From positions 27,714,001 through 27,778,000 of the forward strand of contig OZ260665.1 in assembly GCA_965285935.1 (NCBI GenBank): DNA of 64,000 nt, given 5' to 3'. The notes under the pieces are model-generated. The model was not told where the DNA came from. It did no database searches and saw only the letters and a program-made list of their open reading frames with translations. Shown one piece after another: positions 186 through 39,818 of the stretch. Position 1 is the stretch's first letter. Each line of letters opens with the position of its first letter. The position numbers and the translations under genes are program-made. The DNA is from Ophelia neglecta. Lineage: Eukaryota.

Positions 186-3100
186 CTACACCAATAATAC
201 ACCACAGAACTATTAATAATTACAACTTACAGGAGTGTATTAACAATACCAATACACTGAAAACAAATCGTTTGAAGAGTTACATTGACAAGGAACTGGC
301 TAATATTTTTTTTTGGCAATTTTTTTTTTCTGAAGGTAAAGAGAGCTTCAAAGTTCAAACAGAATGGGTGAAAAATATAGTTTATTGTAGCTAGTGTCAA
401 TAAATCTGTTCAGTGGTGGCTTTATATCTGTTAACATTAATATTATACATGTGCAAGATCAATTTTGACCATCATGGAACATACCTCATATTACCCTGCT
501 TACACAGATTTCTTTACAATATATTATAACTGACAAATGATACCAAAGCACACTATTTCAGCTAGAAGGTGTAGACTGGTCAGATTATCAATGTTACCCA
601 CCAGATACTCTATACCAGTACTTACAATAAGAGTAAAGTTGCCAGACGTCTTGCTCGCCTCCCCACTCCCCGAATTGGCTGGGAATCCCTGAATGTCATA
701 GATTGTCACTGCAAACGTCTTGGCCACCTAGGATCACAGAAATCACACATTAGACACATTAAGGAACCTTTATGACAAAACAAACTACAATCTTTGATGA
801 ATAAATTATTTTATTATAATGAGAAAGGGTTTTATAAAAACATCATAAACATAAATACATGTCAACTAGTTTGAATGTACATGTAGAATAAAATGTAATG
901 TATGCAGGCAGAATTTACTGGTAAAAAAACATGTCACAGTAGAAATATTGAATGTGAAATAAAAGTTCAGGCTGTTTAACAGGTTAAAAGCTACTTAGCA
1001 CAATATCGGGTTGATGTACTGGTAAAAAGGTCTAAATAAAATTGGTAAACAACTAAAAGCCAGTGTGCCAAGCAGGAGAACACTGGAAAAATTCTCCCAT
1101 GCAGTGGCTTTTGTGCAAGAACAAGAGGTTTTTCTACAAATAGTACATCCCCCCATCCTCTGTCCCTCTCAGCCCGTTTCCATCAAGACCAGTGGTCCTG
1201 TCCTCTCTCAGCCTGCCCCTACCTCCCTCCCTACCTACCCAGTGTACTAGAGATACCTACCTCCCATCCTGTGTGGGGTTTGACTGTCAGAGAGAAGGAC
1301 TGCTGTCCCCCTGAGATACCTACCTCCTACCCTGGGAGGGGTTTGACTGTCAGAGAGAAGGACTGCTGTCCCCCTGAGATACCTACCTCCTACCCTGGGA
1401 GGGGTTTGACTGTCAGAGAGAAGGACTGCTGTCCCCCTGAGATACCTACCTCCCATCCTGTGTGGGGTTTGACTGTCAGACAGAAGGACTGCTGTCCCCC
1501 TGAGATACCTACCTCCCATTCTGTGTGGGGTTTGACTGTCAGAGAGAAGGATTGCTGCCCCCCTGAGATACCTACCTCCCATCCTGTGTGGGGTTTGACT
1601 GTCAGACAGAAGGACTGCTGTCCCCCTGAGATACCTACCTCCCATCCTGTGTGGGGTTTGACTGTCAGAGAGGACTGCTGTCCCCCTGAGATACCTACCT
1701 CCCATCCTGTGTGGGGTTTGACTGTCAGAGAGAAGGACTGCTGTCCCCCTGAGATACCTACCTCCCATCCTGTGTGGGGTTTGACTGTCAGAGAGAAGGA
1801 CTGCTGTCCCCCTGAGATACCAACCTCCCACCATGTGTGGGGTTTGACTGTCAGAGAGAAGGACTGCTGTCCCCCTGAGATACCTACCTCCCATCCTGTG
1901 TGGGGTTTGACTGTCAGAGAGAAGGACTGCTGTCCCCCTGAGATACCTACCTCCCATTCTGTGTGGGGTTTGACTGTCAGAGAGAAGGACTGCTGTCCCC
2001 TGAGATACCTACCTCCCATCCTGTGTGGGGTTTGACTGTCAGAGAGAAGGACTGCTGTCCCCCTGAGATACCTACCTCCCATCCTGTGTGGGGTTTGACT
2101 GTCAGAGAGAAGGACTGCTGTCCCCCTGAGATACCTACCTCCCATCCTGTGTGGGGTTTGACTGTCAGAGAGAAGGACTGCTGTCCCCCTGAGATACCTA
2201 CCTCCCATCCTGTGTGGGGTTTGACTGTCAGAGAGAAGGACTGCTGTCCCCCTGAGATACCTACCTCCCATCCTGTGTGGGGTTTGACTGTCAGACAGAA
2301 GGACTGCTGTCCCCCTGAGATACCTACCTCCCATCCTGTGTGGGGTTTGACTGTCAGAGAGAAGGGCTGCTGTCCCCCTGAGATACCAACCTCCCATCCT
2401 GTGTGGGGTTTGACTGTCAGAGAGAAGGGCTGCTGTCCCTCTGAGACACCTACCTCCCATCCTGTGTGGGGTTTGACTGTCAGAGAGAAGGACTGCTGTC
2501 CCCCTGAGATACCTACCTCCCATTCTGTGTGGGTTTGACTGTCAGAGAGAAGGACTGCTGTCCCCCTGAGATACCTACCTCCCATCCTGTGTGGGGTTTG
2601 ACTGTCAGAGAGAAGGGCTGCTGTCCCCCTGAGATACCAACCTCCCACCATGTGTGGGGTTTGACTGTCAGAGAGAAGGACTGCTGTCCCCCTGAGATAC
2701 CTACCTCCTACCCTGGGAGGGGTTTGACTGTCAGAGAGAAGGACTGCTGTCCCCCTGAGATACCTACCTCCCATCCTGTGTGGGGTTTGACTGTCAGAGA
2801 GAAGGGCTGCTGTCCCCATGAGATACCTACCTCCCATCCTGTGTGGGGTTTGACTGTCAGAGAGAAGGACTGCTGTCCCCCTGAGATACCTACCTCCCAT
2901 CCTGTGTGGGGTTTGACTGTCAGAGAGAAGGGCTGCTGTCCCCCTGAGATACCAACCTCCCATCCTGTGTGGGGTTTGACTGTCAGAGAGAACGATTGCT
3001 GCCCCCTGAGATACCTACCTCCCATCCTGTGTGGGGTTTGACTGTCAGAGAGAAGGGCTGCTGTCCCTCTGAGATACCTACCTCCCATCCTGTGTGGGGT

Positions 3101-6100
3101 TTGACTGTCAGACAGAAGGACTGCTGTCCCCCTGAGACACCTACCTCCCATCCTGTGTGGGGTTTGACTGTCAGAGAGAAGGACTGCTGTCCCCCTGAGA
3201 TACCTACCTCCCATCCTGTGTGGGGTTTGACTGTCAGAGAGAAGGACTGCTGTCCCCCTGAGATACCTACCTCCCATCCTGTGTGGGGTTTGACTGTCAG
3301 ACAGAAGGACTGCTGTCCCCCTGAGATACATACCTCCCATCCTGTGTGGGGTTTGACTGTCAGAGAGAAGGGCTGCTGTCCCCCTGAGATACCTACCTCC
3401 CATCCTGTGTGGGGTTTGGCTGTCAGAGAGAAGGACTGCTGTCCCCCTGAGATACCTACCTCCCATCCTGTGTGGGGTTTGACTGTCAGAGAGAAGGACT
3501 GCTGTCCCCCTGAGATACCTACCTCCCATCCTGTGTGGGGTTTGACTGTCAGACAGAAGGACTGCTGTCCCCCTGAGATACATACCTCCCATCCTGTGTG
3601 GGGTTTGACTGTCAGAGAGAAGGGCTGCTGTCCCCCTGAGATACCTACCTCCCATCCTGGGAGGGGTTTGACTGTCAGAGAGAAGGACTGCTGTCCCCCT
3701 GAGATACCTACCTCCCATCCTGTGTGGGGTTTGACTGTCAGAGAGAAGGGCTGCTGTCCCCCTGAGATACCTACCTCCCATCCTGTGTGGGGTTTGACTG
3801 TCAGAGAGAAGGGCTGCTGTCCCCCTGAGATACCTACCTCCCATCCTGGGAGGGGTTTGACTGTCAGAGAGAAGGACTGCTGTCCCCCTGAGATACCTAC
3901 CTCCCATCCTGTGTGGGGTTTGACTGTCAGAGAGAAGGACTGCTGTCCCCCTGAGATACCTACCTCCCATCCTGTGTGGGGTTTGACTGTCAGAGAGAAG
4001 GGCTGCTGTCCCCCTGAGATACCTACCTCCCATCCTGTGTGGGGTTTGACTGTCAGAGAGAACGATTGCTGCCCGCCTGTATTGGCTGCCCAGACCAGGA
4101 ACCCCTCGGTTTCTTCCCTTCCTTCAGCATTGTAGAAGCTCACATCGTTGGTCTCCTCTAACTTGCGGTTGGGGTTGTTGGGGCCCATTATACGCCAGCG
4201 CAGCTATGGAGGTGGTGGAAAACAGAATGAGTCAAATGTAATAGAGGCCACTGTCAAATTCCAATGGTAGATATTGGCCTCAGCAATATGGATGAAAATC
4301 AGGCTCAACTGTAATTTCTCTAATTATTCATACACTTTTTTAATTCATACACTTCAGTTTACCATTATTTTAATTTCATTTAAACCTCTAATTATTAGTA
4401 CACTTATAAGATACCCCATTATGGCAACTATAAAAACTAGCAGTCAAAATAGTAATAATTTTGTTTTGCCTCTAATTATCATATTCCTTGAATTTAATAT
4501 AATTTTCGGTGTCTGAAATATTACAGGAATTACAGTATATGCGCTATTCATGGAAGGATTCCATATATCTTGCAAAGTGATATACAGACACCTAGTTCAT
4601 GTATAGATCAAGCATATTTTTTTAACCCTCTTATGAAATTTGACCAAATAAGTTATTTTCTTTTTGAACATTCTTAATTGGCAGCAGATTTTATCTATAT
4701 TGTTATATATAATTTATCTATATTATTATCATGTGTATCATCTTTCTATAATACAGTGAAACCTTTGAATTAAGACCACCAAAGGGACAGAAAAATGCTT
4801 GTCAGATTTTATAGTTGGTCTGTTTGGACAGGTTATTTAACATTGAAAGTATTAATCAAAGGCCTTATATTGGTGGCCTGAACTGACAGGTGGTCTGATT
4901 ATAGAAGTGGTCTTTAAGGCAGGTTTCACTGTACTTCAAACTTGAGTATTTGAGGGACATCCATGCCCACCTAGCCTGTTAATATAGTGTATTAGTTTTG
5001 CCCTACCGTTTGACTGCCGAGCAGGCCTCCACTCCTCTCTATGGTCAGTGTTATCGTGGTGGTGGTGTCAGGGTTAGGGATGGTGACCAGAGTCTGACCC
5101 ACAAATGAGAACTTGCCGTTGGGGTAATCAGACTTGGCGATGGTCACCACGGAGGTCAGCTCCTTACCAAGGACGGCACCACCTGTAACACACACAGAGA
5201 ACTGGATTGGATGTTTGGGAATTTAATCAACTGCACAACTCACTTGCTGGTAATTTACTTTCCAGCAAACAGAAACAAGATATTATTTTGCTGGTGTGTG
5301 ACACCATTTAACATGTGTTTCTAATAATCATACTTTAATTGAGCCAGGCAAGAACATTGTCTGATTCCAGTTACAAAATATAGTAGGATACAAGTACATG
5401 TATATACCTGACTAGCTGGGAGTGATAACCAACCTAAAATACCAACATTCTAACTTAAAACTTGATGGGGGCTTTAACAGATGGCATAATGGAAGGTTTA
5501 ATTCAGTTTCCATAATTGAAGTTGCAATTTCTGGAAGTATTTGAAGTTCTACAATAATAAAACTACACAATTGACAGCAGGAAAACAGATTTTCACCATA
5601 CAGTAGAGTGAAGTCTGTGAATTAAGACCACCAAAGGGACTGGAAAATTCTGGTCAGATTTTGGAGGTGGTCTGTTTAGACAGGTTATTTAACGTTAAAG
5701 GCTATAGAATGGTTTTTATGTTATTGTCCTCAATTGACAGGTGGTCTGATTATAGAGGTGGTCTTTCACTGTATATGTCAAAGACTGACCCACAGGAATA
5801 ATTTGGAACATACAAAAGTATTATGCTAAGATGAACAGGGCGGTCTCACCTCTTGTGTCAGTTAATTTCACCATGAACTGTTCTGTAAATTCCATTTCCA
5901 TGTCGTCTATGATGGTGACATTGATGGTGGACCTTGCCACTCCGTCGGGGATGATGATCTCGCCGGCATACAGGATGTAGTCCACGTTGGAAGTGGCAGA
6001 TATGTCCTCAGCTCGGTATCGGACAGCCACATCACCAAACATCCCCGGTCCTCTGATCACTGGGATGGCTGCCACTCCCACGTCCTCGTACGCTAGGACC

Positions 6101-9100
6101 AGCAATTAAACAACACAAGTGTCATAGAATAATATAAGACTCCCATTTAATAGGTAAAGATCATGACATTAAATATTTGGGGGCAGACAGGATAATGGAG
6201 GAGACAGAATGGGTTATCTGAGTGATTAATTACCAATGAAGTTGAGTGCCTCCTCGGGAAATTCCACAAAGCCCTCAGCGTTGTCGTTTTTATCTATAAC
6301 GATGGTCTTGGCCGCCTGAGGGCCGACTGCTGGGGCCTGGTCCAGTCTTAGACCAGATATCAAGGTGTAGTTGTTTGACCTGGAATAGAATCAGATAAAA
6401 GGTGGTAACTACATATAGTAGAAATACCATATACAATACCCAGACTCTGCAGAGCATTATGGTAGATAGAAACATCATTCTGTATTCTTTAGAATAAATT
6501 ATCATTTAAACATTGCCAAAAAGACAAAATATGGCTCTCCTGATAATCCAAATATTAATCTAGAACCATATATCTCATATACACAACTAAATTCATAGAG
6601 ATTACCACGTGAAGAGTAAGTTGTTTCTATTGAGGGCTTATACAGCAGCTCACTAGGGGGCTTTTGATTTAACATGTCTAACCACTTACACAGGGACCAG
6701 CAGTTCACTAGGGGGCTTTTGATTTACAGTGTCTAACCACTTACACAGGGTACAGCAGTTCACTAGGGGGCTTTTGATTTAACATGTCTAACCACTTACA
6801 CAGGGTACAGCAGTTCACTAGGGGGCTTTTGATTTAACATGTCTAACCACTTACACAGGGTACAGCAGTTCACTAGGGGGCTTTTGATTTAACATGTCTA
6901 ACCACTTAAACAGGGTACAGCAGTTCATTAGGGGCTTTTGATTTACGGTGTTTAACCACTTACACAGGGTACAGCAGTGCACTAGGGGGCTTTTGATTTA
7001 ACATGTCTAACCACTTACACAGGGTACAGCAGTTCTCTAGGGGGCTTTTGATTTACGGTGTTTAACCACTTGCACAGGGTACAGCATTTCATTAGGGGCT
7101 TATGATTTAACATGTCTAACCACTTACACAGGGTACAGCAGTTCACTAGGGGGCTTTTGATTTAACATGTCTAACCACTTACACAGGGTACAGCAGTTCA
7201 TTAGGGGCTTTTGATTTACGGTGTCTAACCACTTACACAGGGTACAGCAGTTCACTAGGGGGCTTTTGATTTACGGTGTTTAACCACTTGCACAGGGTAC
7301 AGCAGTTCATTAGGGGCTTATGATTTAACATGTCTAACCACTTACACAGGGTTCAGCAGTTCACTTGAGGGCTTTTGATTTATCATGTCTTACCACTTAC
7401 ACAGGGTACAGCAGTACACTAGGGGAGGCTTTTGATTTAACATGTCTAACCACTTACACAGGGTACAGCAGTTCACTTGAGGGCTTTTGATTTACGGTGT
7501 CTAACCACTTACACAGGGTACAGCAGTTCACTTGGGGGCTTTTGACTTAACATGTCTAACAACTTACACAGGGTACAGCAGTTCACTAGGGGGCTGTGAT
7601 GTAACATGTCTAACAACTTACACAGGGTACAGCAGTTCCACTGCTGTGATGTTGACAAAGAACCTCTCAGGGCCTTCAGCAATAACGTCATCCACTATGT
7701 TAATAACCACTGTCTGGCGCGCTTGGCCGCTGGAAAACGTCATTGCTCCAGACGATGCCCTGAAGTCAGGCGGGTCAGAGAACGAGGTGGCAGTCCCGGA
7801 GGAGGTAGTGTATAGAACACGGACCTGTCCGTCTAGGCCGTAATTCCGGACTACTGGTACTGTCACCTGAAAATAACAATTAAACAGATGTCAACTTCAC
7901 TCTAATAAATGTCTGGGAAGAAACTGGGCAGAAAAACATTAATTACTTAATAGGATTAATAATGATTAATTATATACCAAACTAAGGAGAGGTCCACTTA
8001 CTGATGTATGATCTTCCTGTACTACTATCTCTGATGGCTGAGTGAATTCAAACAGGCCATGTGGGTAGTCACTGGCCACAATGGTAATGTCTACCGTCCG
8101 CGCAGACATGTCGATGGTGGCTCCTCCATTGGCAGAAGTCAGCTCTAGTGTATACTTCTGGCGCAGCTCAGGAATGCTGTCGTCTCCTGCCTGCAGGGAC
8201 AGAGATATAGTAGTACATAGTAAGTATAAGTAGTAAGTAGTATAGTAATCTAATAAACACACCTTTTCTGGAGTGTAAATGGTAAAGTCTTGAATAAATA
8301 TTGAAGTGTGCTATTATATTTCAATATAGTTTTCTGGATTGAAAGTTTTCAGTTAAAGAGTTAAATTGCTCATAACCCATCTGTCGTACAGGACTAGTGT
8401 ACTGACCGGTATAACAATGTAAGCCTCACCTTCATTACCCAGCAGTAGTGTACTGACCTGTATGACAATGTAAGCCTCCCCTTCATTACCCAGCAGTAGT
8501 GTACTGACCTGTATGACAATGTAAGCCTCCCCTTCATTACCCAGCAGTAGTGTACTGACCTGTATGACAATGTAAGCCTCCCCTTCATTACCCAGCAGTA
8601 GTGTACTGACCTGTATAACAATGTAAGCCTCCCCTTCATTACCCAGCAGTAGTGTACTGACCTGTATGACAATGTAAGCCTCCCCTTCATTACCCAGCAG
8701 TAGTGTACTGACCTGTATGACAATGTAAGCCTCCCCTTCATTACCCAGCAGTAGTGTACTGACCTGTATGACAATGTAAGCCTCCCCTTCATTACCCAGC
8801 AGTAGTGTACTGACCTGTATGACAATGTAAGCCTCCCCTTCATTACCCAGCAGTAGTGTACTGACCTGTATGACAATGTAAGCCTCCCCTTCATTAACCA
8901 GCAGTAGTGTACTGACCTGTATGACAATGTAAGCCTCTCCCTGCATGTCCTCAAACACCACCTCCCCAGAGGTCTGGAGGAAGGCTGTCAGGTCTCTCTT
9001 CAGGATCTGCCAAGTCACCTTCACCTCTCCATACACCCCAGGCGCTCGCGCCAACTGGATCTCAGCCCTACACAGATAAGTATAACATCAGCATGGGGAA

Positions 9101-12100
9101 TATAAACATACAGTACAGGAAATTATGTCTGCCATACAACAGGGGCTTACTAGCACAATCTGGATCTCAGATCTGACAAATCTTAATTATAGACACTTTG
9201 CTTACCTGTGTCACTACTAATGGAATCGTATCCAGGAGGTAAAAGGTTTAAAGAAAACTAACTCTTATATATGGAAATTATCAAAAACTAACTGCACATG
9301 AACTGATCCCTTAATGTCTTGATTAAGACTCGAGACTGGTACCTTTAGCTCCCCGAGAGATCAAACTTACATTCCGTCGTATCCGGCAGTGGGCTCCCCC
9401 ATAACCAGTCTACGATAGCCGGGGGTGATGGACACGGTGCCACCGGCCCCTGGGTCAGGCAGGATTACCACGGTGGCATCCCCCTCTGTGGGGCTGATTA
9501 TAGCGTTGTTGTCAACGGCGACCAGGGAGACCGTGAATGTCTCCTGGCCCTCCAGCTGGTTGTCTGGCTTGGTTACTAAGGTGATCTGTTTACGGGACTC
9601 TCCCTACAAACAGGTCAGAAAGAGAAAAATATTTACGAATCTCAGCAAAAGATATTTTTATACCAAGCATTGTTTGGATTAAATGTTCTTTTCAACAATG
9701 TGAATTATTATACTAGTGTACTGAAGTCTTACTACTCATGGACCAAAACCGGATTGTGCCCATTGGGGGTTCATTGAAGTCATACTACTTACAGGCCCAA
9801 ACCTGACCGCCCATGAAGGGTTCATTGTATCCATACTACTTACAGACCCAAACCTGACTGTGCCCATGAGGGGTTCATTAAATCTATACTACTAACAGGC
9901 CCAAACATGACTGTGCCCATGAGGGGTTCATTGAATCCATACTACTTACAGGCCCAAACCTGACTGTGCCCATGAGGGGCTCATTGAAGTCATACTACTT
10001 ATAGGCCCAAACCTGACTGTGCCCATGAGGGGCTCATTGAGGTCATACTACTTACAGGCCCAAACCTGACTGTGCCCATGAGGGGCTCATTGAAGTCATA
10101 CTACTTACAGCCCAAACCTGACTGTGCCCATGAGGGGTTCATTGAATCCATACTACTTACAGGCCCAAACCTGACTGCTCATGAGGGGTTCATTGAATCT
10201 ATACTACTAACAGGCCCAAACCTTACTGTGCCCATGAGGGGCTCATTGAAGTCATACTACTTACAGGCCCAAACCTGACTGTGCCCATGAGGGGCTCATT
10301 GAAGTCATACTACTTACAGGCCCAAACCTGACTGTGCCCATGAGGGGTTCATTGAATCCATACTACTTACAGGCCCAAACCTGACTGCTCATGAGGGGTT
10401 CATTGAATCTATACTACTAACAGGCCCAAACCTGACTGTGCCCATGAGGGGCTCATTGAATCCATACTACTTACAGGCCCAAACCGGACTGTGCCCATGA
10501 GGGGTTCATTGAAGTCATACACTGCGTCTGCACCGAGTCTCCAGTCGACATTGACCACTCCGTCTGTCCCTCGACGTACTATGGTCAAGGTCACTCGCCC
10601 GCTGGGGTCAAACTCTATCTGGGACTCCCTAACTGTCACCTGGCAATGGATAGACTTGTAAATTGAATGATTACATGATCTGGTACTATCAAACAGTAGA
10701 CTGTATTGTGCATTTATAAATGAAATTCACTCTACAATTGGAGTATAGAATACAATTGACTTCAATCATTTCCTTAACAAGGAAGATCTATTCAGCACTT
10801 TACCTTTCTTAATCCCTGAGGTTGCATTAGAAATAGAAAAATCAAGAAATTCTTATTAGTCTTACTATATTCATTCACAAAAACATAATCTCCATTTCAA
10901 GTTTGGCTTGGTTTTGAGAATAATTAATGTTGCTTCTTAACTAATGCTTTCATCTGCTTTTATCCACATGTAAATGACAAATTTTTCACTTTTTATATTC
11001 TTTGAACCTTAATGTGTTTACATTTGAAGGAGCTACCTGAATTGTCTCAAAGGAGAACACTCCGTTGGGGGAGTCGTTACGTAGGATTCCTACACGGACA
11101 GTTTGGTCAGAACCAATCGAGGCTCCTCCAGAGGTCACTCGGATCAACTGGACATCAAATGTCTGCAAAACACATAACATGTCAGAATACAGTAAACTTG
11201 TCATTATACCATGTCTAGGGCTTAATTACTTTCCTCAATTCCATTTGTTGACATTCTGATAATTACTGTTGTGAAGCTTGGTAATTATCATTATCTTGTT
11301 TGAAGGACACCTACATGTATATTGATCTATATGTACAATACCCAAGCCTCCAGGCTGCAAGGCTCACAAAGGAGCACAGGAGTAAGGTAAAAAGAATTGG
11401 AGTTCTTTAAAGTAGAGATACCTCACAGGGACTGTCAGACAATTCTGATGTTGATGACACCACATCATTGTGAACCAGGTGGCCTTACTGTCTTCAGCCT
11501 GGAATTTGGCTCAGCTATACTATAGTAACTCCTTTGTGAAGCCATTTTATCTCCTCTTTAATGAACCTCCCATCCTTTTTTTACCTTAAAGTGCCCCTGT
11601 ATGGCTACGAGTAGCATTTCTAGCCCGGTGGGAGACAATCAGCAGAGATCAGGTCTCAGATGATGTGATGAGCCTACTATACCTGGAGGTCCTCAGGCAG
11701 AGTGTCGTCCACTATAGTGATGACAATGAAGGCTTCCTGCTGACCCTCCTTGAACCTGACTATACCTCCGGAGGGGGTGAAGTCGTCCGTGTCCGCCTCG
11801 CGGGGACTGGCCTGCCAGGAGACCTCCACCTCCCCAAACAGGCCCACCGTACGGCTCAGCTTCAGTCTCACCTGCCCTATACCCTCGTACACGTCTACAC
11901 GGTTCTCTATGTTCTGGAATAACAAGGGGAGCACAAGCATCTCACTACAGAGATTGTCCAGAAACTCGCACATAACATCAAGCCTCTAGCAGCAAAGCTC
12001 TTACAGTAACATGTTGCATATATGGAATATTTAAAAAGGAGCCTGAATTGGAGATCATATGTCAACCTGAATAGTGTCTAGTTTAAAACTGGGTGTGTTT

Positions 12101-15100
12101 CTGGCTGCATCAGACTGGTGTCCAGGCTGGGGAACTGAGATTAAAATGGTAAAATTTGCAACAGTTGCTGGCCCCACTACGATATGATTATGGCTATGCG
12201 TGATATTGCATGAACTCTGGTGCGCTTTGCTGATTTAATAAAATGCTAGACGCATGTTTTTATTATATGAATCAAGTTATGCAAGTGTGTATGCCTATCA
12301 TTGTTTCTGATACAGATATTCTAGATGTCTATAACTCTTGTGTTGTATATAATTTGTATAGCTAAGCACAATCCAAGGCTGTGCCTTAAACATATTAAAC
12401 AAGTACACGGATACCCATCATAAATATACAGTAAAAAACCTGTGAATTGAGACCAGCCAAGGGACTGTAAAATGTTGGTCTTATTATAGAGGTGGTCTCT
12501 TTAGACAGGTTGTTTTACATTGAAAGTGCACAGTAGGGTCTTCATATTAGTGGTCTGAATATAAAGATGGTCTGAATATACAGGTGTTCTTTAAGGTAGG
12601 TTTCACTGTATATGTTATCTATCAATAATCTGAGCCTGTTTCCTTTACTCCTGTCAGGCCTATGCATACCTTAGTGATACTGAACTGGACAACTCCCCTG
12701 GCATTATCATTCTCAGTTATGGTCACCACGGCTATGTCTCCAGGACGACGCACACTTGGTGCTGACCCCTGCTGGATGCCGGACACACCGATCAACTGAA
12801 CGGAGGTGATATTCACCCAAAATATCTCTGTCACTTCTGGGGCAGAGTCCTTCAAACGCAAGTGGGAAAAATAAATGAAGAACCGTTATCAACCTGTACA
12901 TAAACTCTTTGACTGAATGATTTTTTAAAAACCTCTATTCAATAAATACAACAAACATGGTATACCACCTCTAATTTTTAAGTTTTAATTCAAAAAGGTT
13001 AAGCTATCTGCTAAATCAGGACTAAACCATTTCTCATCAGTAGTACAGATGCCATTGTTGTTTTGGCTTTGATTTCTTCCAGCCTCAGGGTTATAACAGC
13101 ATGTTGTGTTTACCGTTAGTATGGTGATTTCTACGGGGATCCTGGTGACATTCTCCCTCATGTCCACCGTGGCCTGCTGAGCCACGTAGTCCTCTCCAGA
13201 GACCGCCTGCTCCTTGGTGGCTACAGTCACCGCTCGTAGGGTCCTGCTCAAGGTAACCAACTAATACATGTACTGCCGGTAGTTACAAACACAGTGCTTT
13301 TGAAAAGTGCACACTATTGCATGGAATGTGTAAGATCATTGAAAAGGGCAAGAATGTTTGGTCAAATGATATATATGTGAGTGCTAGCCATTATCATCAC
13401 TGTCACTGGCTCTGACAGTTTGACATCTGCATCAAGGAAAAGCTTGTTAAGCTAGGGCAGAAATTACAATACTTAACATGATATATGTCTGTCCAATTGT
13501 TAAGTCATTAAGGACTCAATGCCAAAAAGTTTGCCTCAGTAGCTGGCAGTTGTATGCCTGACAAGACCTTACTTGTATAAGACACTATAAGGCTTGATGT
13601 GTACCATCTTTTACAAACTAAAGGTCACTTCTCATACTATGATGACATCGTTGTTCTTTTGCAATAAATGAGGTTAAATTGAAATGTCAATGCTTAGCAA
13701 ATATGTAACATTTCATAGCGTCAAATGTTTGGAAATAAAGTCTGGCCAGACACTCCTAACAAAAAAACTGAGTAGATGGTACTGAGATGTTGATGACTGG
13801 GATGCCTGCTTACATGTATGTGACCCTAATGTGACCCAGAGACCCCTGCCTCCTGGTCAGGTGTAACAAGACGGTGGAGTCTCCCCCCTCAGGCTCGGCT
13901 ACCAGGTAGGTGGCCTTCTCCCACAGCACCACTCCATAGGGGGAGTCATTGGCCAGCACTGTCAGTCTGCATACATTGTTAGCACCTGGAAGCATGAAAA
14001 GACATAAATTATAAATAGATTATTTTATTACTTAATACTCATCTATCCACTCATATTAAATTACACATCTATCTACCCTGTCTGATCCCCCCCCCCCCCC
14101 CCCCACCACACACACACACTTAGCCAATGCAGCAAGGCTGACTGGCTGTATAACATGCCACACATCCGCCACCCCCCCACCCCCCCCACCCCCCGTCTGA
14201 ATGCACTCGTACCCCCTTATCCATTGTTACACGAAAAAACTAACCATCTGCCCCACCCCCTTCCTCTCAACTTTTGTCTGTCTTGCATCCTCCCCCTGAA
14301 CCAATGTTGAAGGACAAATATCCCAAACCCCCCCACCTCACAACCACCCTCATATGACTGTACACTGGTCCCTATGATGTAGGGACACCTCTACATCCAA
14401 ACAAAAGTGTCCCAACATAGCAGGTGTCCCTTCATCAGAGGGACATTAATATAGGAAAGATAGGACATGAGCATTGAAAAAAGGTCCTGTGGTTGGAGGG
14501 AGTCCCTTCATCAGAGGGTCCCTTCATCGCAGGGACCACTGTGCCTTACCTATTTTGGCGCCCCTGTTGGGGAGTGAGGTGCCTTTCTCTACGACCTCGG
14601 TCAGTGTTAGGTAGGAGAGCTCATCCATCTCCGACAGGTTGTCATCTCTGATAGTGATTGTGATGGTCGCTGCTGCCTGGTCATTGGCAAACTCAACCTA
14701 GGGACAAAATGCAGTAACAAAAGTCATTAACATTGTGGAAGACTGGTCATAACTCGTCCTACAGTAAAGGCCAATCCTAAGACACTTCCTGCACCAATTA
14801 ATGGCTAAATCTGGAATCTTCAACATTTCCAGTGGAGAACATTTCGTGCATTACACTATAGTATATTGCTTTACTGCAACATTTAAGTGTCTTCTTATGT
14901 TATTTAAGTAGAAAATGCCTGTTAACCCGCAATCCGAGGCAGGCCCCTAGGTCTCACAAAGCACTGGCATTCTTATAATACTAAGTTTATGGACATCAAA
15001 GATCTCAGTCTCTCATGGGTATGAAGGCAATGACGTAACATATGTCAATTTAAATCTTTTTTTACAACTGTACTCTCTGTACAGTTTTCAAACAAAGAAT

Positions 15101-18100
15101 TGGTGAAAACAAGGGTGGCATTTAAGTGATTGGGACAAATTACACCTGGGACATAGAGTAGTTTTAAAACTAAACTGAGTTGTGGCTTAGCCTAAATCAA
15201 ATAGCTACTGGTACCATATAATGTAAGTAGTTATATGAAAAAAATGTCCAGTGCTAGAGCATACCTTTCCCTCCACAGGGAATATGTCCAGAGCCCCCTG
15301 GTGGGCTCCCGAGGCAGTCCACCTCACCACCACCCTACCACTGGAGCCCCTCCGACGGACCACGTTGATCTGAACCAGGTTATCTGCTCCAGGAGTCTCC
15401 TCCTCTCTACGCTCCAATGAATCCTGAAATACAATGGTATATACAACCATCTGACCTCCCGAGATATGTAGGCCTTAGTCCTCTGTTAAACACCTCTGGA
15501 CTACCTTCATCAAATTCAAAATGTCACCATTTTAGTTACTTGTAACTTTAGATGTCCAAGTTAAGGTATATATCACTATTAAATTGTGACTATGAACTCG
15601 TTATTTAATAGTTTTCCTTATAAAACCCCAAACCAATTTTCTCAGTCGCTTCCTTTCCCTAAATCATGCGAATATGACAGGATCCTTTTCAGACAATATC
15701 TAAACAACATACATCGGCAAATTCTACAATGCCGTGTCCATCATCATTTGACAGGATGTGGACTGAGACTTCATGACGTGGCCCTAGCTCCGCCCCTTGT
15801 CTGGGATTGGTCAGTTCTACAAAGAACGTCTCCGTGTCCTCGGCATTGAGATCATCCAGGATTGTCACAGAAGTGGTCAGCTCTGTCTGACCCGGAACAA
15901 AGGTCAAGGTCACCGATCTGTGTAGAGTAGAACAAAAATTAAACCAAGAAGAGAATAAATTTAGAATATTTGAATAGATAATTCCTTGCTTCATATACAT
16001 TTAAGTCTCTGGGGCACATGCCTATACACCTATATAATTCACAGTTTTTTTTACTAAAACATATTAGATTTGTAGCATGATAGTCAATTTTCATGATTAT
16101 AATATTGGGCTACCTTGGAATGTAGTCGCTGTCTCCTAGCAAATTGACCTCTCGGACGCTAAACTGTAGCACTCCAGACGAGTTGTATAAGGGTGCAGTC
16201 ACCATGGCAACGTGGTGACCAGCTGACTGTTCCACTTCCAGGGGATGCATGTCCATAGCCTGCGACCCCTGCCAGGTCATGTTGAACTGACCCATGGACT
16301 CATCCCAGGCGTACACAGCACTGGGGGAGCTTTTGGAGGCTATCACCAGGTAGGCTGACCAATAGGAAACAGTAACTCTTATATGGACCAATAGGAAACA
16401 GTACCTCATATATGGACCAATAGGAAACAGTAACTCATATATGGACCAATAGGAAACAGTAACTCATATATGGACTGGCAATTCAATTATAATAAGGAGC
16501 TTCAGCATTAACTTATATGTTATAATAGATGCACTATTGGAAACATTTATGACAAACTGCCTAAAATCTGTTCTTGTTATAAGCATTGATAGGCTGATAT
16601 CAAATATTCCTTTACCTACTGAAGCCTAATGTACAGGTAATGCATGTTGCTATTATAGGTGTTCTCCAAAGGATGTGAGACAGGTTTGGAGGATTTTGTT
16701 TGTTTTTCTTTTAGATTAGGTTATTTTTGGCCTTTCTTTGTAACTTACCCACACTGTTGTCCACGCTGAAGACACCTACATGTTCTATGACATACCCACA
16801 CCGTTGTCCATGTTGAAGACCATCATGTTCTATGACTTACCCACACCGTTGTCCACGTTGTCAACCCCCCATGTTCTATGACTTACCCACACCGTTGTCC
16901 ACGTTGTCAACCCCCCATGTTCTATGACTTACCCACACCGTTGTCAACGTTGTAGACCCCCCATGTTCTATGACTTACCCACACCGTTGTCAACGTTGTA
17001 GACCCCCATGTTCTATGACTTACCCATGCCGTTGTCCATGTTGAAGACTCCCACATGCTCTATACCATTGCCCCTGATCTTCTGGATGGAGGTCCACAAC
17101 TGGGTTAGACTGTTCCAGCTGTATATCTAGCATATCAATACAAACAAAAGAAATACTTTAAGACTAGAGCTTTGAAATGTGAATAAATGTATCTCTGGTA
17201 TGGGTATGTTTATATGTGGTTAACAGTACAAAACAGTTTCAAAACATGTCAATTTCCATTTTATTTTCATTAAGTTGGCCAGATGAAGTTTATTTTTATT
17301 AGCTGAGAGTAGATAAGTCGGGAGACTTACATTAAGATCCTGTTGGGTGTTTCCGATGTTGTCCTGACCGTTGGCTATCACCAGATACGAGTCAGTACGG
17401 GTCTTAAAGAACGTGAGATCCACTGCGCCGTGGGTGTCCACTTGCTGGTGAATGGTTAAATGGTCATCAGAGTCCAACTTGTAGATTATAGACCTGGAAA
17501 TGTATCAAGAAGTGTATAGGAAAAAAACTGGATACCCTACCAATGATATCCCACAGAAGATGAGATCTTGATTCTGAGGTATATTTACATAATTTATATT
17601 TAACTGGTCTCATTCTCAATTCCAAGCCATGTTAATGGGAGATGAAAAACTTGCAATGGTTTTTTTGACCAAGTAGTGGGATATGTTGTAGTGCATTTTT
17701 TACCTCTGACTTTAAGACTATCAATAGTGTCAAAAGGTATCTTCAAAGTACCTGTCCACAACAAAATTTCCAGTGATATCATTCTGACAGTTTGACCTTA
17801 AAACCAGAACTCACTTTCTTACCTCAATACCAGTACTTACTTGAGCTCATATGCGATGCTTTCTGACCTCAATACCAGTACTTACTTGAGTTCATATGCC
17901 CTGCTCTCTGAGTCAAAATGGTTGGCAATGGCAACAAAGATGATGCCATCCACTTCCAGGCTGTCCACTGCAATGGCTCCCTTGGTTGCTAGGAACTGGA
18001 TTGGTAGAGAGCCAAACTTGTTGTTTGTGGCCTCCCATTGGTAGACGTATGACATGACCCCAGTTTGACCTTGGTTGTTCTGGTAGTTAGCAATCACCAG

Positions 18101-21100
18101 GAAAGTTTTATCACCCTTTTTGAAAAATGCTCCGTCTGTAGCCCCTATAGTGTTGAGATCCTGGACCTGGTAGATAGACAGACCATCATTACTTGATTAT
18201 CTCTACAATAGTTCTGCAGAAAAAATACCATTTTGTCAGTTTTGTGGCAATCATGAAAATTGTGAAACTGAATCAATTACAAACTGACATAGTAAATTAG
18301 TGTTATAAAATAACTAAAAACTAGGCCAATGCTGTCGGGGGGCCGACAGCAAGGGGTATATCCGCGAATGCGTGCAATAATCAAATGGGAAACATGGCAT
18401 AAGGGGAGGTAGTGAATATGGTAGCTTTTAGTTGGCACAAAAGATAACGACCTTAACTAAATTTTGTTCAGGTCATTAATAAAGTTAAACTAGTTAACTT
18501 ATTACACAGTACTAGTTAACTTATTACACAGATTGTAGTAGGTTCTATTTGACCTCAATAACAATGCAGGTCATTCTTAAAGTTGGTGTCATATGACCTC
18601 AATAATAATGCAAAACGACCCTAACTAATTTTTTTTCAGGTCATTAATAAAGTGAACTTATTTGTAGGTTCCATAAGATCTCAATAATAATGCAAAACGA
18701 CCTTAACTAAATTTTTTTCAGGTCATTAATAAAGTTAACTAGTTAACTTATTACACACATTGTAGTAGGTTCCATATGACCTCAATAATAATGAAAAACT
18801 GCCTTAACAATTTTTTTTCAGGTCATTAATAAAGTTAACTAGTTAACTTATTACAAATTACTAGTTAACTTGTTACACAGATTGTAATAGCTCCTATATA
18901 ACCTCAATAATAAGGCAGGCCATTAATAAAGTTGGTTCCATATGACCTCAGGAATAATGCAAAACCACCTAAACTAATTTTTTTTCAGGTCATTAATAAA
19001 GTTAACTAGTTAATTTATTACACAGATTGTATATACAAAGTCCACCTCTATAATCAGACCACCTGCCTATTCAAACCACTTTTATAAGAACCATGATGTA
19101 TACTTTCAATGTTAAATAACCTGTCTAAACAGACCACCTCCGAAATCAGACCAGTATTTCCCAGTCCCTTCGGTGGTCTTAATTCACAGGTTTCACTGTA
19201 GTAATTACATGAATCATGACACAAAACTTCAAGCCAATATCATCTATAGTTTGGAATATATGATAGAAAATGTGTTTTTGAAATAATTAATTAATTATTT
19301 TGACTAATTAATAATTATCAGAAATTCACCAGAATAATTACAGGTCTTCCTCTCAATAAGGTCTATGGCTGTGTCAAATTAGAAAAAGATGTATCAAATA
19401 TTTTTTGTGTTATTGCAGAAAAAGTGTTTCTGACGTAATTAATTAATTGTTTTAACTAATTAATAATTATTGGATTTTCACCAGAATCTAATCAGTTCCT
19501 CCTCTCAATAAGGTCTATGGCTGTGTTGAATTTGAAAAAGATGTACGTAATGGTTTTTGAGTTATCGCGTTAACGACTAAAATCTGCGGCGGCGGCGCTA
19601 CTGAAAACATAATATCCGCATTTCGCGGATATAATAAAGTAAATAACTTGTTTCAATAGAAAACATCAAACATAAAGTTTTGCTTGTTTTTTGTGAAAGT
19701 TCGGACTAGTGCACAGCCATTTGGGCTAGTAATGGACCAACTTCACATGCCGGAATAAACAAGTAGCTTGGAAAGTTTTTGCCAAAGACTGCCAAGTCTT
19801 ATTTTAGATAAAATATGGTAGTCTGGCAATCTTACCACAGTGAGAGGCCCATTCTCCTGTACCAGGTAGAGTCTGGACTTGGTAGCATGGCGGTTGTAGG
19901 AGCCGTGGTTGGCTATTATCAGGTAAGTCTGACTGCCTATTGTCATACTGGCAGCCCCCTTGGCACCATCTGTCTCTATGGTCTGGGTTAGAAATCACAT
20001 CATTGGTAACTTTTATTATGGACTACCTTTAAAGGCTTTTAGTCATCAAAGTTCTTAAAATATCTAGTTTACTTAACTGAGCAGAATGACTTATTAAACA
20101 TTGCACAATAAATACCTTATTATTTGCACAAAAAATTAAACTCAAATATGTTGAATGGACAATAATGCAAGAACACATAGTATAATATTAAATAATTCTG
20201 TTTAATATTTTGATGTTGGTATATGAATACAAAAAATAATATTTCAGTCATTAGTATATTGGACGACTTGAGTTAAGAATGGTGCTGCCACTACCTGGAC
20301 TTGTACCAGTGATCCCTGCCACCTATAGAGTATGGAGGGGTTGATAACACCAGTGGTTGATACTGAGGCCCCGTCGCTACCCACTGTGGTTACCATTGGA
20401 CCCACCACCCTGTCATTAAGTAGTATGGCATAGCTAAGCCCGTGGGCTGAGAACCCCTGCCACCTACTGACTTCTAGATTACCAATCTGCAAGACAAATA
20501 AAACAAAACTCATATTAGCATAATGAAACAATATGATAATAGATAATTATTCTAATTTCTTTTTAATTTAAATATTACTGATTTTATTGCACAAATAATT
20601 TATTGACAGGTAAAACAGTTGATTACAATATCAAAAATAGCCCTGGAGTAACTTACTCACTGTTGGATAGTATATTGATCTGGTATTCATTGAAAATGAG
20701 AAGAATTTACTTAATAAATTTACCCTGCTATGGCCAATTTCACCAATTTGGTGACACTTACCTGTTGCACAGTCGACAGGGTGAACCGATTCCCTGGGAT
20801 GGCCTTTGCTGTGCCATCACTGGTTACCATGTCAACCGAGATCCGGTCCATTGAACCCTGTGACCTTGTGACTGTAAAGTAGATAGTCCCCGCTGTCTCT
20901 TCAACATTAATAGATGTGTCACTGAAATTAAATATCACATTGTTATTGAACATCCTGAGTTTGATGTTTTGTTACGATAGAAATCCACCAGACAGATTAT
21001 GTACCTTGATCCTGCAGGCAGTATTTCCAGCATGCCATAGGGAGCGTCATTTCTCTCTATGATAACGTAGAGGGAGTTAGCCGGTCCCAGATCAGCACCG

Positions 21101-33100: not shown

Positions 33101-36100
33101 CCTACCTTGAGAGGGTCTGGTTGGTTCTTGACATTCCAGCTTGTACCAGCCTGCGGGAGAGGCTTGCCAGCCCTCGGCATGGTGTAGTACTGGAACACGG
33201 ACCTTCCTCCGGAGGTGGCCTCCTCCAGGATGTCCAGCTCCCGAGTCAGGTAGTACACCTTCAGCTGTCCATAACTTCCTCCACTAGAGTAGAAAAAAGG
33301 TTAAAGTTCTTCATTGCATGCCTCAACTGCAGCTTGTAAAAACAAGTACATAATATAAAATCTATTGATCACACCTATCGGAAACAATTAACCAACATTT
33401 CTATATTACCTACCAAAATTGTTTTTACATAAAGTCCTGTTCAAACAAAATTAATGGTACATCACAGCTTCCTTGTGCGCTATATACCATTTATTGCCTC
33501 GGCCTTAAAACTACTTCTCTCCCAGTAATTAAACTATGAAAATTTTGTCACTCACACTCTGGAAACTGGGACTGTCTGTGTAGAGTCCTGGCCAATCACC
33601 TCACTAATAACAAACTCTGCCTGAGAGAACTCCACCGTGCCATGAGGGTTGTCATTGGGCAGGATGCTCAGGGTGAAATTAGCCTTGTCTGACAAGATAC
33701 GCCCATTGTTGTTTGCCGATGTCAGAATCAACATAATATCCTAAATGTGGGTAGTAAAACATGATTGAGACTTTGTATTGGAGAACGAGAAACAGTTCAG
33801 TTTTTAATACATCATCTGATACTATGGTTTTAATGCTTTACATATATATGTTATTTTGCCAAATGACCTAAAACTTAAAATGCGTGTAGCAGATTTTTGT
33901 TTTATTTGTTCTTCTGAAAATAATGATTTTAGATTCATAAATTGGGAGATGTAGCCTAGTTGATAGAGACATATATCTGCTAATATTTTACACACTACTG
34001 TTTGGTTTGTGGCATAAAATGCGCAAAAAGTAAATAAAAGTATACAAATCAATTGATTTGACTGATTCCCTACACATAGATCAATATCCAGGCAATCGAG
34101 GGGTTTTAAGGAGGGATTTGCGGTTATATGGCAGTGTTGTTTGAGACCTACCTCGGTACCCTCCGGGTCACTGTCAGCCAGCACACTGAGAGATATCATC
34201 TGTCTGGCCTCGTTACTCACAAAGTAGATGGCTCCCGAGGTGGGGCTGATATCTATGTCTGGGGCGCCACCTACAGGGAGGAGCTAGCATATTATATGAC
34301 CAATGGAACATGGTAACGGTAACAAGGCCAGATAAACAGAAAGGAAAATAATACTAAAACAAACTGACAGATTACCGGTAGTGAGAGCTGAAAAGTCTGG
34401 CTACCTTACGATAGACCCCTGGTATTAATAACATGTTACTCCAGAGGGGAGATCCCTTGTTACTCTAAGTTATAAAAACCAATTTTACTCTTGACCATTT
34501 AATAAAGCTTATATATTTCAGAAACCTTTTTTTTTCTCTAAGCTTGAACTAAATATTTATGCAAGCTTTTGACATGAATTTAAAACCAATTATAGCATTC
34601 TTACTGATTTGCAAGTAATCATAGTGTGTATGTCAAAGGTGTGATTGAGTGGGTTAAACATTATATCAATGAGTCAGTGAAAATCCTGAATATGATCACA
34701 GCATTGTGAAATAAATTATCAACTTTTAAATCAAAATATGGGTTTGGCATTGCGAATTTTATTGATATGCATTAATTGATGTACAAGCAATGAAAACCTG
34801 GCATTCCTTAACAGAGTGTCATACATTGTCTATGTAATCATGTGATATGAGAACCAATGATAGTTATAACAGTGCTATTGGTTCATCTTACTTGTGTTGA
34901 CAGGTGGTAAGACCTTGCCTACAAGTCACAAAGAGTATCACATTAATAACCAGCAATTCATCAGGGGCATGCAGGGGGAGAGGGGAGGGGGAGGGGGAGT
35001 AAGAAGGGGCTTGCAGGAGGGAGGGGGCTGTAATAAGGGGCTTTCAGGGGGAGGAGAGGGGAGGAGGGGGAGAGGAGGGGAGGGGGGAGGGTGGCGATAG
35101 TAATAAGAAGCGTGCAGGAGAGACACAGTAATAAGATCAAATAAACTACCAATAACTTCAATAGCAATCTTATTTTGTCCTTTTTTAATCTGTAGAAAGT
35201 CTATTTCATAACAGCAAATGATATCAGATAATTATAACTACCTATGACTTTAAAATAAAACAAAAAAACAGGGTATATATGTCAAAATATGACAAGATAC
35301 CCCGGTGTTTTGTTTTATTTGATATTATATTGCTACGATTGATTCAATACCTATGACTTTAATTATCAAGATAACATTGGAATGTTCAAATCTAAACACT
35401 AGGTAGGTAGGTAGGTAGAAGGATTTATGAAATAATTTGTTCAGACCACTGACAGGACTAGTTCACGATGAATGTTGATATTTACCGTTAAGTCTGGCGT
35501 GCCAGTTGACGGTAACCACCCCCAGGGTGCCTCCCGTCCTGACGACCGGGATCTCCACAGGGGCAGACCGGCCTATGGCTGGCTCTTCTACACTCATGGA
35601 GGGAGATTCAAAGCCTGAAAACAAATAATCCATTAACGATTCATTCTTCCCTGACTTCTTGGTAAAAGAAATCAAGTTTTTTTATAACACATGACTTTAC
35701 CCCAAATGACACAAAATCTAGTCCTATTTCTAATCAATGAACTTTTTGCAAGTATCAAGAAATAATTTGAAAAATTACTAAGCTATGCTATTTTCCATTG
35801 AAATGTAGCTAATGGCACATCAGCATACTACTTATACATTACTTATACCTGTTGATTGAACTGTGCTGATAATAAAATATTAAAATGTCAATAAATGAGT
35901 TTACCGAAAGCTCCATGCGGGTCGTCAGAAGACAGTATGGTGACCACAGTTTCGGTGACCGGCCCCAGCATGGCTCCTCCTGCTACAGGCTCCACCAGTC
36001 GTATTGAGAAGGTCTCCTCCAGCTCTGGCAGGCGGTCGTTGATGATGTCCACCGGTACCCGTTTCTCTCTCTCGCCACTGATAAGGACCACGTCGGTGGA

Positions 36101-39100
36101 GGACACGCTGTAGTCCAGACCGTAGGTGGCACTCCCTGAGCCAACCTCAAACTTCACTGTCACCTGCCACAAATATGTTAACTTCACTTCTGTCATTATA
36201 TACCCATGATCTTTAACAACAATGTACCAACAAACTTCTATATTAGCTTTCACAAATTAAGTTGTAAGTAGTGCTCTGCTTTTAAATAGTTGTTTTGTTT
36301 TTATTTCAAATTGAAGGCTTTTATCAATTAAATAGTCATGTTTGGGATTTCCTTGGAGTATTAGCTTTCAGAAAAATATATAGAGACATTCGAAGTCATG
36401 GTTATCAAGAAGTGTTTGCCAGTTTTCACCATGAGAAGCCTTTAAAGTCTTACTAATAAAAGAAACATTTTGACAAAGTAATGTTCAGAAGCTCAAGCTG
36501 GGCTACAAACAATGGATTTTTACAGATTGGTTTTATTCCCTGCACAGTATTGAGATGACTATATAAGATGAGTGTTTACCATTGCCAGGTTGACAGTTAT
36601 AACTTACAGATCCAAAGGCTCCTCCTGACCTGACCACACTGGTCAGCACCCCAGTGAACTCCTCACTGACGGTTATAGCGTCGTTGGACAGCTGTAGAAC
36701 GCCGCTGGGGTTGTCATTGGCTGATATAATGATCTGACTGTAACACTCTGTGACAGGACCCAGGCGAGGTGAATCCTGAACTGTTAACATACAGGCTTAG
36801 AGCGTAGTGATATGCCCCAGACTGGACTTATTTCAATGTATTACAAATTTATGACCTTTTTGATGACATCACTTACACACCCTATAAGCTATTAAACATG
36901 ACTTTGTAAAACGAAGTTAGCCCATCACATTGCTCAATTTGTGCAGATCAAATAGCATTACATAATACTGTTTGTGCAGTCTATTACTACCATTTTATAG
37001 GCCTGACTAAGGAATTGGAAAAGAAATTTAATTCACTTCTCATTGGAATTCTATGAATCATACCAGACTTTGGTTTCTATCAGATAAGAACCAAGAAACT
37101 AGACAGCATTTAGGCAATCATAGAAAAAATTGGCTAAACTTAGAGCAAATTTTACAACAGCATTCTGCACAGCCCTTTTAAGATGACAACCTGAAAATCC
37201 AAATTGAGCCTTTTGAAGACCAACTTTTAGTTTTCTGTTAATAACCGAACCAGCCTAAAGCTACGGACTAATCAGAAATACACAAACCAATTCTGGACTG
37301 TTCCCCCTGTATGAGATAGGCGCCCGTCAGCCGTACAAAGAAAGTCTCGTCCACCTCAGGCTCCAAGTCGTCTCTGACGGTGACATTGAAGGCGGCGGTG
37401 GTGTTCCCAGGGCCTATGACCACAGACCCTGTGGAGTTGGAGTAGTCCAGGGGGCCAGCCCTCGTCCCTCCCGGCAGGTAGGGGTAGCTCTCCCAGGGGC
37501 GCAGTGTGGAGTAGTCTACTCGCACTGTGCCAAAGGTCCCCGAGTTAGCCACTCTCTCAATGGTCACTGCTACTTCTGATAGAATAAAGATATGCTGGTA
37601 ATCATCCAGTTATGTTACATTCCTAATCAAAGTATACATTGCCTCCACTAAACGGTCAATATTTAAATAATGAAGTAGGCAAAATCAGTAGAAAGGAATT
37701 GTATGCTTTTGTGTGGTGGTTTTTCATTATTTAATCAAAGAAGGAAAAATTCCCAGGTACAAACATGGAAGCACAGACTTTAAAATCCGGAAGTGCATAT
37801 CCCTCTATTAGTTTACCTTGGAATGTCTCTTCCACATAGATGGGCCTGTTGTCGGCTGCTATAACAAACACCCCGTAGGGATCGTCATTCCCTATGACGG
37901 TTATGCTGGCCTGCAGCTTGCCTTCTTCTCCCAAAGAGCCCTTCACAGAGAATAAGTTTGTTCATTGAAACATCATTATTAAGAGTTAAAGCAGAGTGTT
38001 AGATTTTCGCTGATATTTGAACCATTCTAAACTCTTTATTTCCCAATTTCAAATAACTTGTTTTAATTGTTTCAAGTTTGCTAAAATTGAAGATTTTTAA
38101 AAGTGCTCTATGACAAACAATATTGAAAAGTGAGTGTTGCAAACTGCTTTAAATTTAAGGATACTTTTTTATTTAGCAAAAGAAAAAATCTCCAAGGCAA
38201 ATCCACAAGATAAAGTTGTTTTCAAAGAACCTTGCATTGCAGTAGGCATGCCATATAGATGCAAACATGATGGTTTTATTGACATGTACCTGTGAGACTT
38301 GTAGTATGTACAGAAATCAATCATTACCAGTGAGACTTGTAGCATGTATACGAATCAAGCCCTACCAGTGAGACTAGTAGTATATACATGAATCAAGCCC
38401 TACCAGAGACTTGTAGTATGTTTATGAATCAAGCCCTACCAGTGAGTCTAGTAGTATATACATGAATAAAGCCATACCAGTGAGACAAGTAGTATATACA
38501 TGAATAAAGCCACACCAGTGAGACAAGTAGTATATACATGAATCACGCCCTACCAGTGAGACTTGTAGCAGTTGGACATGGTATATCTCATCCAGCTCAG
38601 GCATGAGGTCGTCTCGGATGCGCAGGACAAACTCCGAACTCTGCTGACCTGTGTCAAAGGTCAGATAACCAAAAGATTCCATGATGTCATCGTCTGTGTC
38701 ATCAGTGACCTGCCAGGTCACATTCACCTGGCCGATAGCTCCACCTTCTCTCACAACCTACAGTGTCGACATGAGACATGTGCCAGTTAACTTAGAAAGT
38801 GCTCAATGACCAAACAGCTTAGGACCATGCAATTATATTCATTTGATGATATCCAGATTGAAGATGACAACAGAGTTCAATGTACTAACATTTTAATTTA
38901 ATTTTTGCTACCAAACTGCTAGCCTATATATACAATATCAACATGTCACTTAATTTTATGGACTCTGCTACGAGTAGCTGTATTTTTACAGTTTTACAGT
39001 TAGACCTGACCAATAAATTTAGACTGAGACCCATGTTTAAGTGAAGGGCCTAATACATTGTATCAACGATTTGATAACTAATTTTGTCAAGCTGGCTGGT

Positions 39101-39455: not shown

Positions 39456-39818
39456 CTGCAATAGAAATGTTTATTAAAATAATGGATATATGATATATCA
39501 TGCAACAAACCAGAGTTTGTGTGATTTTGGGGGATGCCATGATGAGTTGATCAGGGTGACCAGGGCCACGTTGTGATTATCACAAAGCTACCTGGGTTGT
39601 GCCATGATTTGGTCTGTATAAAAGCAGTTACACAAAACTACCACTTTTCTACCGCTCACCGAAACTCTCACTTGCTGGAAAGTGTTAACACAAATACGAA
39701 CTAGTTAACTCAACAAAATTAATGAAAGCATTGGTAGGCTTACAAACTTCAATACCCAAGCTCTGCTATATGAATTAGTACACAAAGCAGGGTTACAGCC
39801 AGACTAGGCAAGCAAGTG

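Follow-up and report, generated by a model that had tools for sequence, protein, structure and literature searches.

Tandem arrays whose first unit spans a 5′ splice site are several-fold more numerous in Ophelia neglecta than we expect by chance, at least in the region analysed here. The window, a stretch of 64,000 nucleotides (GenBank assembly GCA_965285935.1, contig OZ260665.1, forward-strand positions 27,714,001 to 27,778,000), covers 49 exons of an ADGRV1 gene, seven of which end in a minisatellite that has copied the end of the exon together with its donor. In a wider region of 264 kb the first unit spans a donor in 22 of the 83 arrays with a period of at least 20 bp, where 2.9 are expected (Poisson P about 1e-12), and no array in this region spans an acceptor, where 2.6 would be expected without selection. 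The kind of array is already known; what is unusual here is the density. We consider it probable that these are locally born minisatellites, tolerated by use of the first donor, with donors or exon 3′ flanks favoured in addition.

Tandem arrays were called with Tandem Repeats Finder, in the window first and then in the 264-kb region, which is the window plus 100 kb on each side. Positions in this region are marked r and equal the window coordinate plus 100,000. Exon chains were built by a dynamic-programming gene finder, with codon usage trained on long open frames and generic splice-site matrices; the interiors of tandem arrays were masked at this step, and both programs were applied to both strands of the region. 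Pfam searches were done exon by exon. The window does not contain any N.

We place ADGRV1 on the minus strand because the unit consensuses carry reverse-complement donor motifs; read in this orientation, an open frame leads up to every array, enters its first unit and ends there at a GT. The frame-consistent chain in the window has 49 exons and 48 introns (39455 down to 42), and the gene as a whole is a single minus-strand chain from a signal-peptide-like first exon at r 201,720 to r 79,962. In the window Pfam matches Calx-beta in four exons and EPTP in two, and two of these six exons bear arrays. Among the array-bearing exons of the window, two of the six tested have a match (Calx-beta, EPTP), four have none, and one further exon is too short. 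Beyond the window, exons of the gene match Laminin_G_3 and GPS, and its seven-transmembrane part appears as hydrophobic exon peptides only. The predicted domain architecture is that of ADGRV1 (VLGR1). The arrays of the window and the exons that seed them are as follows; a slash in a donor marks the end of the exon.

1250-4079, minus strand: array of 45 copies of 63 bp, each unit with 53 nt of exon and 10 nt of intron; in frame, stop-free; GT kept in 44/44 later units
4027-4203, minus strand: exon seeding the 63-bp array; donor GAG/GTAGGT; frame fits both neighbours; no Pfam match alone
6641-7638, minus strand: array of 18 copies of 55 bp, 17 nt of exon and 38 nt of intron; 109/164-bp higher-order pattern
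7622-7866, minus strand: exon with donor TGT/GTAAGT; Calx-beta (Pfam E 8e-16)
8395-8946, minus strand: array of 10.8 copies of 51 bp, 30 nt of exon and 21 nt of intron; copies 98% alike; in frame, stop-free
8917-9067, minus strand: exon with donor CAG/GTCAGT, the sole end that preserves the frame into the exon at 8190
9722-10520, minus strand: array of 15 copies of 53 bp, 46 nt of exon and 7 nt of intron; 210-bp higher-order pattern
10475-10639, minus strand: exon with donor CCT/GTAAGT
16357-16475, minus strand: array of 4 copies of 29 bp, repeating the pyrimidine-rich intron end; stops 3 nt short of the acceptor of the exon starting at 16354, AG uncopied
16743-17063, minus strand: array of 7 copies of 46 bp, 40 nt of exon and 6 nt of intron
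17024-17081, minus strand: short exon in the EPTP (EAR) region; donor TGG/GTAAGT
17813-17911, minus strand: array of 2.2 copies of 45 bp, 26 nt of exon and 19 nt of intron; youngest of the seven; stop two codons after the donor
17886-18166, minus strand: exon with donor CAA/GTAAGT; EPTP (Pfam E 8e-11)
38287-38570, minus strand: array of 7.5 copies of 38 bp, each unit with 15-17 nt of exon and 21-23 nt of intron
38554-38757, minus strand: Calx-beta-like exon with donor CTG/GTAGGG

At all seven donor arrays the first unit is the 3′ end of the exon plus its GT donor, and the array extends from there into the intron; the last exon bases are 4027, 7622, 8917, 10475, 17024, 17886 and 38554. When the first donor is used, the reading frame between consecutive exons is preserved. 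A preliminary description of the window, made from its letters alone, had reported seven arrays with these periods, each with a monomer of exon end and intron start and with the real exon end as its first copy. Tandem Repeats Finder recovers all seven, the measured shares are 15-53 nt of exon and 6-38 nt of intron, and the frame-consistent exon model places the exon end in the first copy. The description counted seven affected introns out of 49; the seven stand, and the total becomes 48. It also held that most non-transposon arrays in the exon-dense part of the gene are of this type and that no acceptor AG is duplicated. Donor arrays indeed make up 84% of the tandem-array bases in that part, and the 29-bp array, the sole acceptor-side array in the region, abuts its acceptor and spares the AG. 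We reject a dispersed repeat or transposon as the origin of the arrays, since the one unit that was searched for in the 762-Mb genome, the 63-bp unit, is restricted to its own locus.

The arrays are not confined to ADGRV1. All four genes found in the region have donor-spanning arrays, distributed as follows.

ADGRV1, minus strand: 11 donor-spanning arrays, the seven of the window and r 82480, 84202, 179590, 190730
HERC-like gene, plus strand: 7 donor-spanning arrays, r 8577, 11904, 16877, 25839, 42312, 42735, 51589
SLC27-like gene, plus strand: 2 donor-spanning arrays, r 73578, 74916
BTAF1-like gene, minus strand: 2 donor-spanning arrays, r 216154, 225119

We regard donor-spanning arrays as belonging to the genome at large rather than to ADGRV1 in particular. 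The preliminary description, which spoke of amplification within one gene, was too narrow on this point, as three neighbouring genes carry such arrays as well; its observation is correct, and stronger than it was stated. Roughly one donor in eight in the region bears an array, with up to 55 exonic nt per unit and between 2 and 62 copies. Some of the array-bearing exons outside the window were recognised by eye at the arrays. Five of these hand-found exons have Pfam matches, to AMP-binding (twice), GPS, Laminin_G_3 and DUF3535, and the two SLC27-like exons match AMP-binding at consecutive profile positions.

Other arrays in the region have a different relation to exons. Within an intron of the HERC-like gene (r 36381-41469) a 44-bp A+T-rich unit without a donor is repeated about 116 times over 5 kb, and large arrays are therefore not limited to donors. 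In a large ADGRV1 intron, a 107-bp unit is repeated nine times at 53813-54770; read on the minus strand, the units hold ATG and a GTAAGT/GTGAGT donor-like site. No convincing open frame runs into this array, which could mark the end of an unannotated short or non-coding exon or have its donor-like site by chance. A 49-bp unit in about 28 copies (1.4 kb) occupies 63748-64000 and continues past the window end to C8:27779123, with no donor motif and no nearby exon.

How many donor-spanning arrays should we expect? Our chance model uses 154 model donors, collapses each array to one unit, lets births fall uniformly, and removes exonic and acceptor-spanning events. The expectation of 2.9 given above comes from this model, and it becomes 3.2 if genic sequence alone is considered. 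A genome-wide comparison of donors, acceptors and chance had been proposed in the preliminary description; in the region it comes out at 22 donor arrays, no acceptor arrays and about 3 donor arrays expected. Base composition is rejected as the cause of the excess. The G+C content of donor-centred windows is 0.475, against a background of 0.37, and the G+C dependence of non-donor arrays translates this into a birth rate at donors only about 1.5-fold higher.

We also counted phased triplets of splice-site heptamers across the genome, counts that a few huge satellites dominate and that we treat as uninformative: GGTAAGT gives 4630 against 1065 for its backwards control, GGTGAGT 2212 against 4720, and the acceptor heptamer TTTCAGG 908 against 845. 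The donor counts owe most to a dispersed 53-bp satellite with the consensus donor GAG/GTAAGT in its unit, which is present at many loci close to one end of C1, at about 632 kb, 657 kb, 1.37-1.41 Mb and 1.74-1.76 Mb.

Human minisatellites that begin with a monomer across an exon-intron boundary have been described by Borensztajn et al. 2006 (PMC1557585). One is that of F7 intron 7, a 37-bp unit in 5-9 copies, for which 50 constructs showed that only the most upstream donor is used, the pseudo-sites being functional but silent (PMC1557585). IFI6 (6-16) has an authentic donor and 25 pseudo-sites according to Turri 1995 as cited in the same paper (PMC1557585), which also lists CBS intron 13 (31-bp unit, 15-20 copies), LMNB2 (100-bp unit, 10-15 copies) and PDGFA intron 4 (81-bp unit, 16-18 copies). 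The seven window arrays are of the F7 intron 7 type, with head-to-tail units of 38-63 bp in 2.2-45 copies, a first unit that holds the authentic donor, and repeated donors. As in F7, the first monomer spans the boundary, identical pseudo-donors follow the authentic one, and the array lies on the intron side. Unlike in F7, where the unit has only 4 exonic nt and 5-9 copies, the arrays here reach 55 exonic nt and 45-62 copies, and there are eleven in one gene and about one per eight donors regionally. For F7, donor usage and copy-number polymorphism have been shown, whereas the arrays here are known from the DNA of one sample.

The IFI6, CBS intron 13, LMNB2 and PDGFA intron 4 arrays resemble ours in repeating exon-end plus donor units (12-100 bp, 10-26 times), but they are single loci in their genes, and nobody has claimed that they exceed chance. 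The preliminary description supposed that the class was undescribed. For the kind of array this is incorrect; for the enrichment, our literature search turned up no genome in which arrays of this kind are described as systematically enriched, a weak negative, as subscription journals were thinly covered. The model of Rogers, in which introns are gained by tandem duplication of exonic AGGT (PMC2891723), is similar in that duplication adds splice signals at an exon edge. It differs in that a duplication inside an exon makes a new intron, whereas here an existing donor is copied into its own intron. We reject intron creation of this type for our arrays, which start at pre-existing donors in existing introns and leave the exon chain unchanged.

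Under the explanation that we favour, an array would start when a short tandem duplication of 29-83 bp, made probably by replication slippage or by microhomology-mediated repair, falls by chance across an exon/intron junction, and it would grow by further slippage or unequal exchange. The spliceosome would take the most upstream of the identical donors, as it does in F7 (PMC1557585), leaving later copies as plain intron and making such a duplication harmless. Indirect support for this lies in the preserved frame between exons, in the 14 of 22 periods that are not multiples of three and in the in-frame stops of five of the other eight. A duplication across an acceptor or within an exon would alter the mRNA and be purged, which would produce the donor-only asymmetry. 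The structure of the arrays, their enrichment and their presence in neighbouring genes are shown by the data, whereas first-donor use and the manner of array birth are steps that we infer. The first donor outscores the median later donor in 7 arrays, equals it in 12 and falls below it in 1, a pattern that fits selection confined to the first copy. At the ends of young two-copy arrays a few bases are shared, e.g. five at r 42735, as either slippage or microhomology-mediated duplication could leave them. Old arrays break off within a unit, so that their founding junctions can no longer be read. The junction microhomology reported in the preliminary description could be checked in part only, with about 5 nt at one young array outside the window.

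Tolerance accounts for the asymmetry between donors and acceptors, not for the excess. Because the arrays are about seven times as many as the model predicts, donors or exon 3′ flanks would have to be favoured further, at birth or in persistence. G+C-richer exon ends and protection of the exon side from flanking deletions would supply an ordinary part of this excess, which we judge to be part ordinary and part unexplained. These two factors may perhaps account for three-fold of the seven-fold excess, and the rest could be due to mutation biased toward donor-proximal sequence or to selection favouring U1 sites in rows.

Several points weigh against the favoured explanation. Uniform births followed by a sieve give about 3 arrays where 22 are seen; the contribution of G+C is as small as stated above, protection from exon-side deletions would by our reasoning give at most about 2-fold, and about 2-3-fold of excess is left unexplained by the model as stated. 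Four of the 22 arrays, all in the HERC-like gene (r 8577, 11904, 42312 and 42735), rest on weak exon calls; without these, 18 remain against about 3 expected. IFI6 and CBS also use their second and third donors (PMC1557585). Finally, read support comes entirely from one sample, probably the assembled one.

A different possibility, which we regard as tentative, is that 5′ splice sites or exon 3′ flanks are true birth hotspots of minisatellites in this genome, the underlying process being linked to transcription, splicing or chromatin where exons end. Polymerase pausing, R-loops, replication conflicts or a break-prone motif would then seed the duplications, and selection would only clear the harmful products. 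The seven-fold excess over uniform births speaks for such a focus, the more so as it is already seen among two- and three-copy arrays (7 of about 33) and as composition explains little of it. Array-bearing donors also score higher than the other model donors (mean 3.24 vs 2.30, P 0.01), in line with a mutational focus, and for the same reason we reject the idea that arrays compensate for weak donors. However, the exonic share of the unit ranges from about 0 to 0.87 in the 22 arrays, with a mean of 0.56 that does not differ from 0.5. The donor thus has no fixed place within the unit, and none of the breakpoints is bound to the exon/intron junction. A bias toward exons is moreover inseparable from a bias toward donors, as births within exons or at acceptors are invisible. 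ADGRV1 is a sensory-tissue gene, and germline transcription-coupled damage, on general knowledge, fits poorly with that.

It is unlikely that the rows of donors are positively selected as sites for the U1 small nuclear ribonucleoprotein (U1 snRNP), where they might help to define the exon upstream or hold back premature intronic cleavage. GT is retained in 157 of the 162 later units of the 22 arrays, with the full 9-mer in most, and in nine of the 11 large arrays the donor 9-mer varies less than the rest of the unit, as such selection would have it. The latter difference is not significant (Wilcoxon P 0.10), and we have dropped constraint on downstream 9-mers as a trend only. The arrays sit at strong donors rather than weak ones, their copy numbers, from 2 to 62, give no sign of an optimum, and in 7 arrays later donors are weaker than the first.

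A pure selective sieve acting on uniformly placed duplications, with no added bias, seems to us quite improbable as a full account. The preliminary description had left the choice between a mutational process and a sieve. The sieve is borne out by the F7 experiments (PMC1557585) and by the lack of acceptor arrays, for which it accounts directly, but it fails for the number. With an expectation of about 3, and 22 arrays observed, it is contradicted within the region unless the number of donors or the landscape of births is several-fold off our estimates, and from this mismatch we conclude that an extra bias toward donors exists.

That the arrays serve as alternative 5′ splice sites, adding variable in-frame peptide units to the protein, is very improbable. 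Three ADGRV1 arrays, with units of 63, 51 and 39 bp, keep the frame without a stop for three units or more, and the use of second and third donors in IFI6 and CBS would give the idea a precedent. Yet the period is a multiple of three in only 8 of the 22 arrays and not in the other 14, which is the share expected by chance, and in-frame stops lie within the first one or two units in 5 of the 8 triplet-period arrays. Selection for in-frame units is rejected on the same chance share.

The notion that the arrays are an assembly artefact and absent from the DNA of the organism is hardly credible, with nothing for it except the single-sample origin of all reads: unit-to-unit matches within arrays are 65-98%, with differences at 2-35% of positions, and higher-order periods occur in several arrays, neither of which an assembly error would give. 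The locus is present in three DNA runs from one sample as contigs built from reads, and those over 12400-18300 enter the 46-bp and 45-bp arrays from either side. The k-mer depth rises about 6-fold over the 7-copy array (46 bp) and about 2-fold over the 2.2-copy array (45 bp), scaling with copy number, and for these two arrays the contigs of one sample bear out the presence in reads for which the preliminary description had called. These contigs rule out an artefact; they are not independent biological replication.

The same read contigs provide some further observations. At 12400-12600 and 14370-14566 the k-mer depth reaches 16,000-290,000, implying very high-copy dispersed repeats, and reads break at a G-rich run at 14078-14198. 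Over 13000-18200 dozens of single-base differences, together with a 17-bp deletion at 15471, separate the three runs from the assembly and from one another, which fits high heterozygosity or pooled individuals.

Donor-spanning minisatellites such as those of F7, IFI6 and CBS are rare natural models of how the spliceosome chooses among identical donors. A genome in which about one donor in eight is arrayed, as in our 264-kb sample, would offer natural test cases by the hundred or thousand, covering every unit length, strength and frame; a single gene here has eleven. The seven-fold excess also raises a question: are exon/intron junctions mutational hotspots for tandem duplication? If the hotspot reading were true, a sizeable share of introns would carry rows of decoy donors; nature would have set up an experiment on donor choice across the whole genome, and introns would have a new way to grow.

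The arrays are of practical importance for genome annotation as well. They mislead gene finders (ours, without masking, reads through two in-frame arrays), and they inflate introns by up to 3 kb. At 1250-4203 and 8356-9087, where the 63-bp and 51-bp units keep the frame and lack stops, exon and array together form open frames of 406 and 244 aa, which gene finders will call as coding.

Two further repeat and gene families were noticed. The same internally duplicated element of 100 bp/152 bp occurs at 18590-18855 and 19265-19545 and at r 6159, 18494, 19015, 55410 and 64955, in several introns belonging to two genes, and has the appearance of a small dispersed transposon that carries a tandem duplication of its own. 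Elsewhere in the genome, big clusters of intronless frames, each about 290 aa long and with a match to the protein kinase domain, lie at C1 136-140 Mb, C5 111-116 Mb and C9 15.8-19.8 Mb, and these clusters indicate a strongly expanded kinase family.

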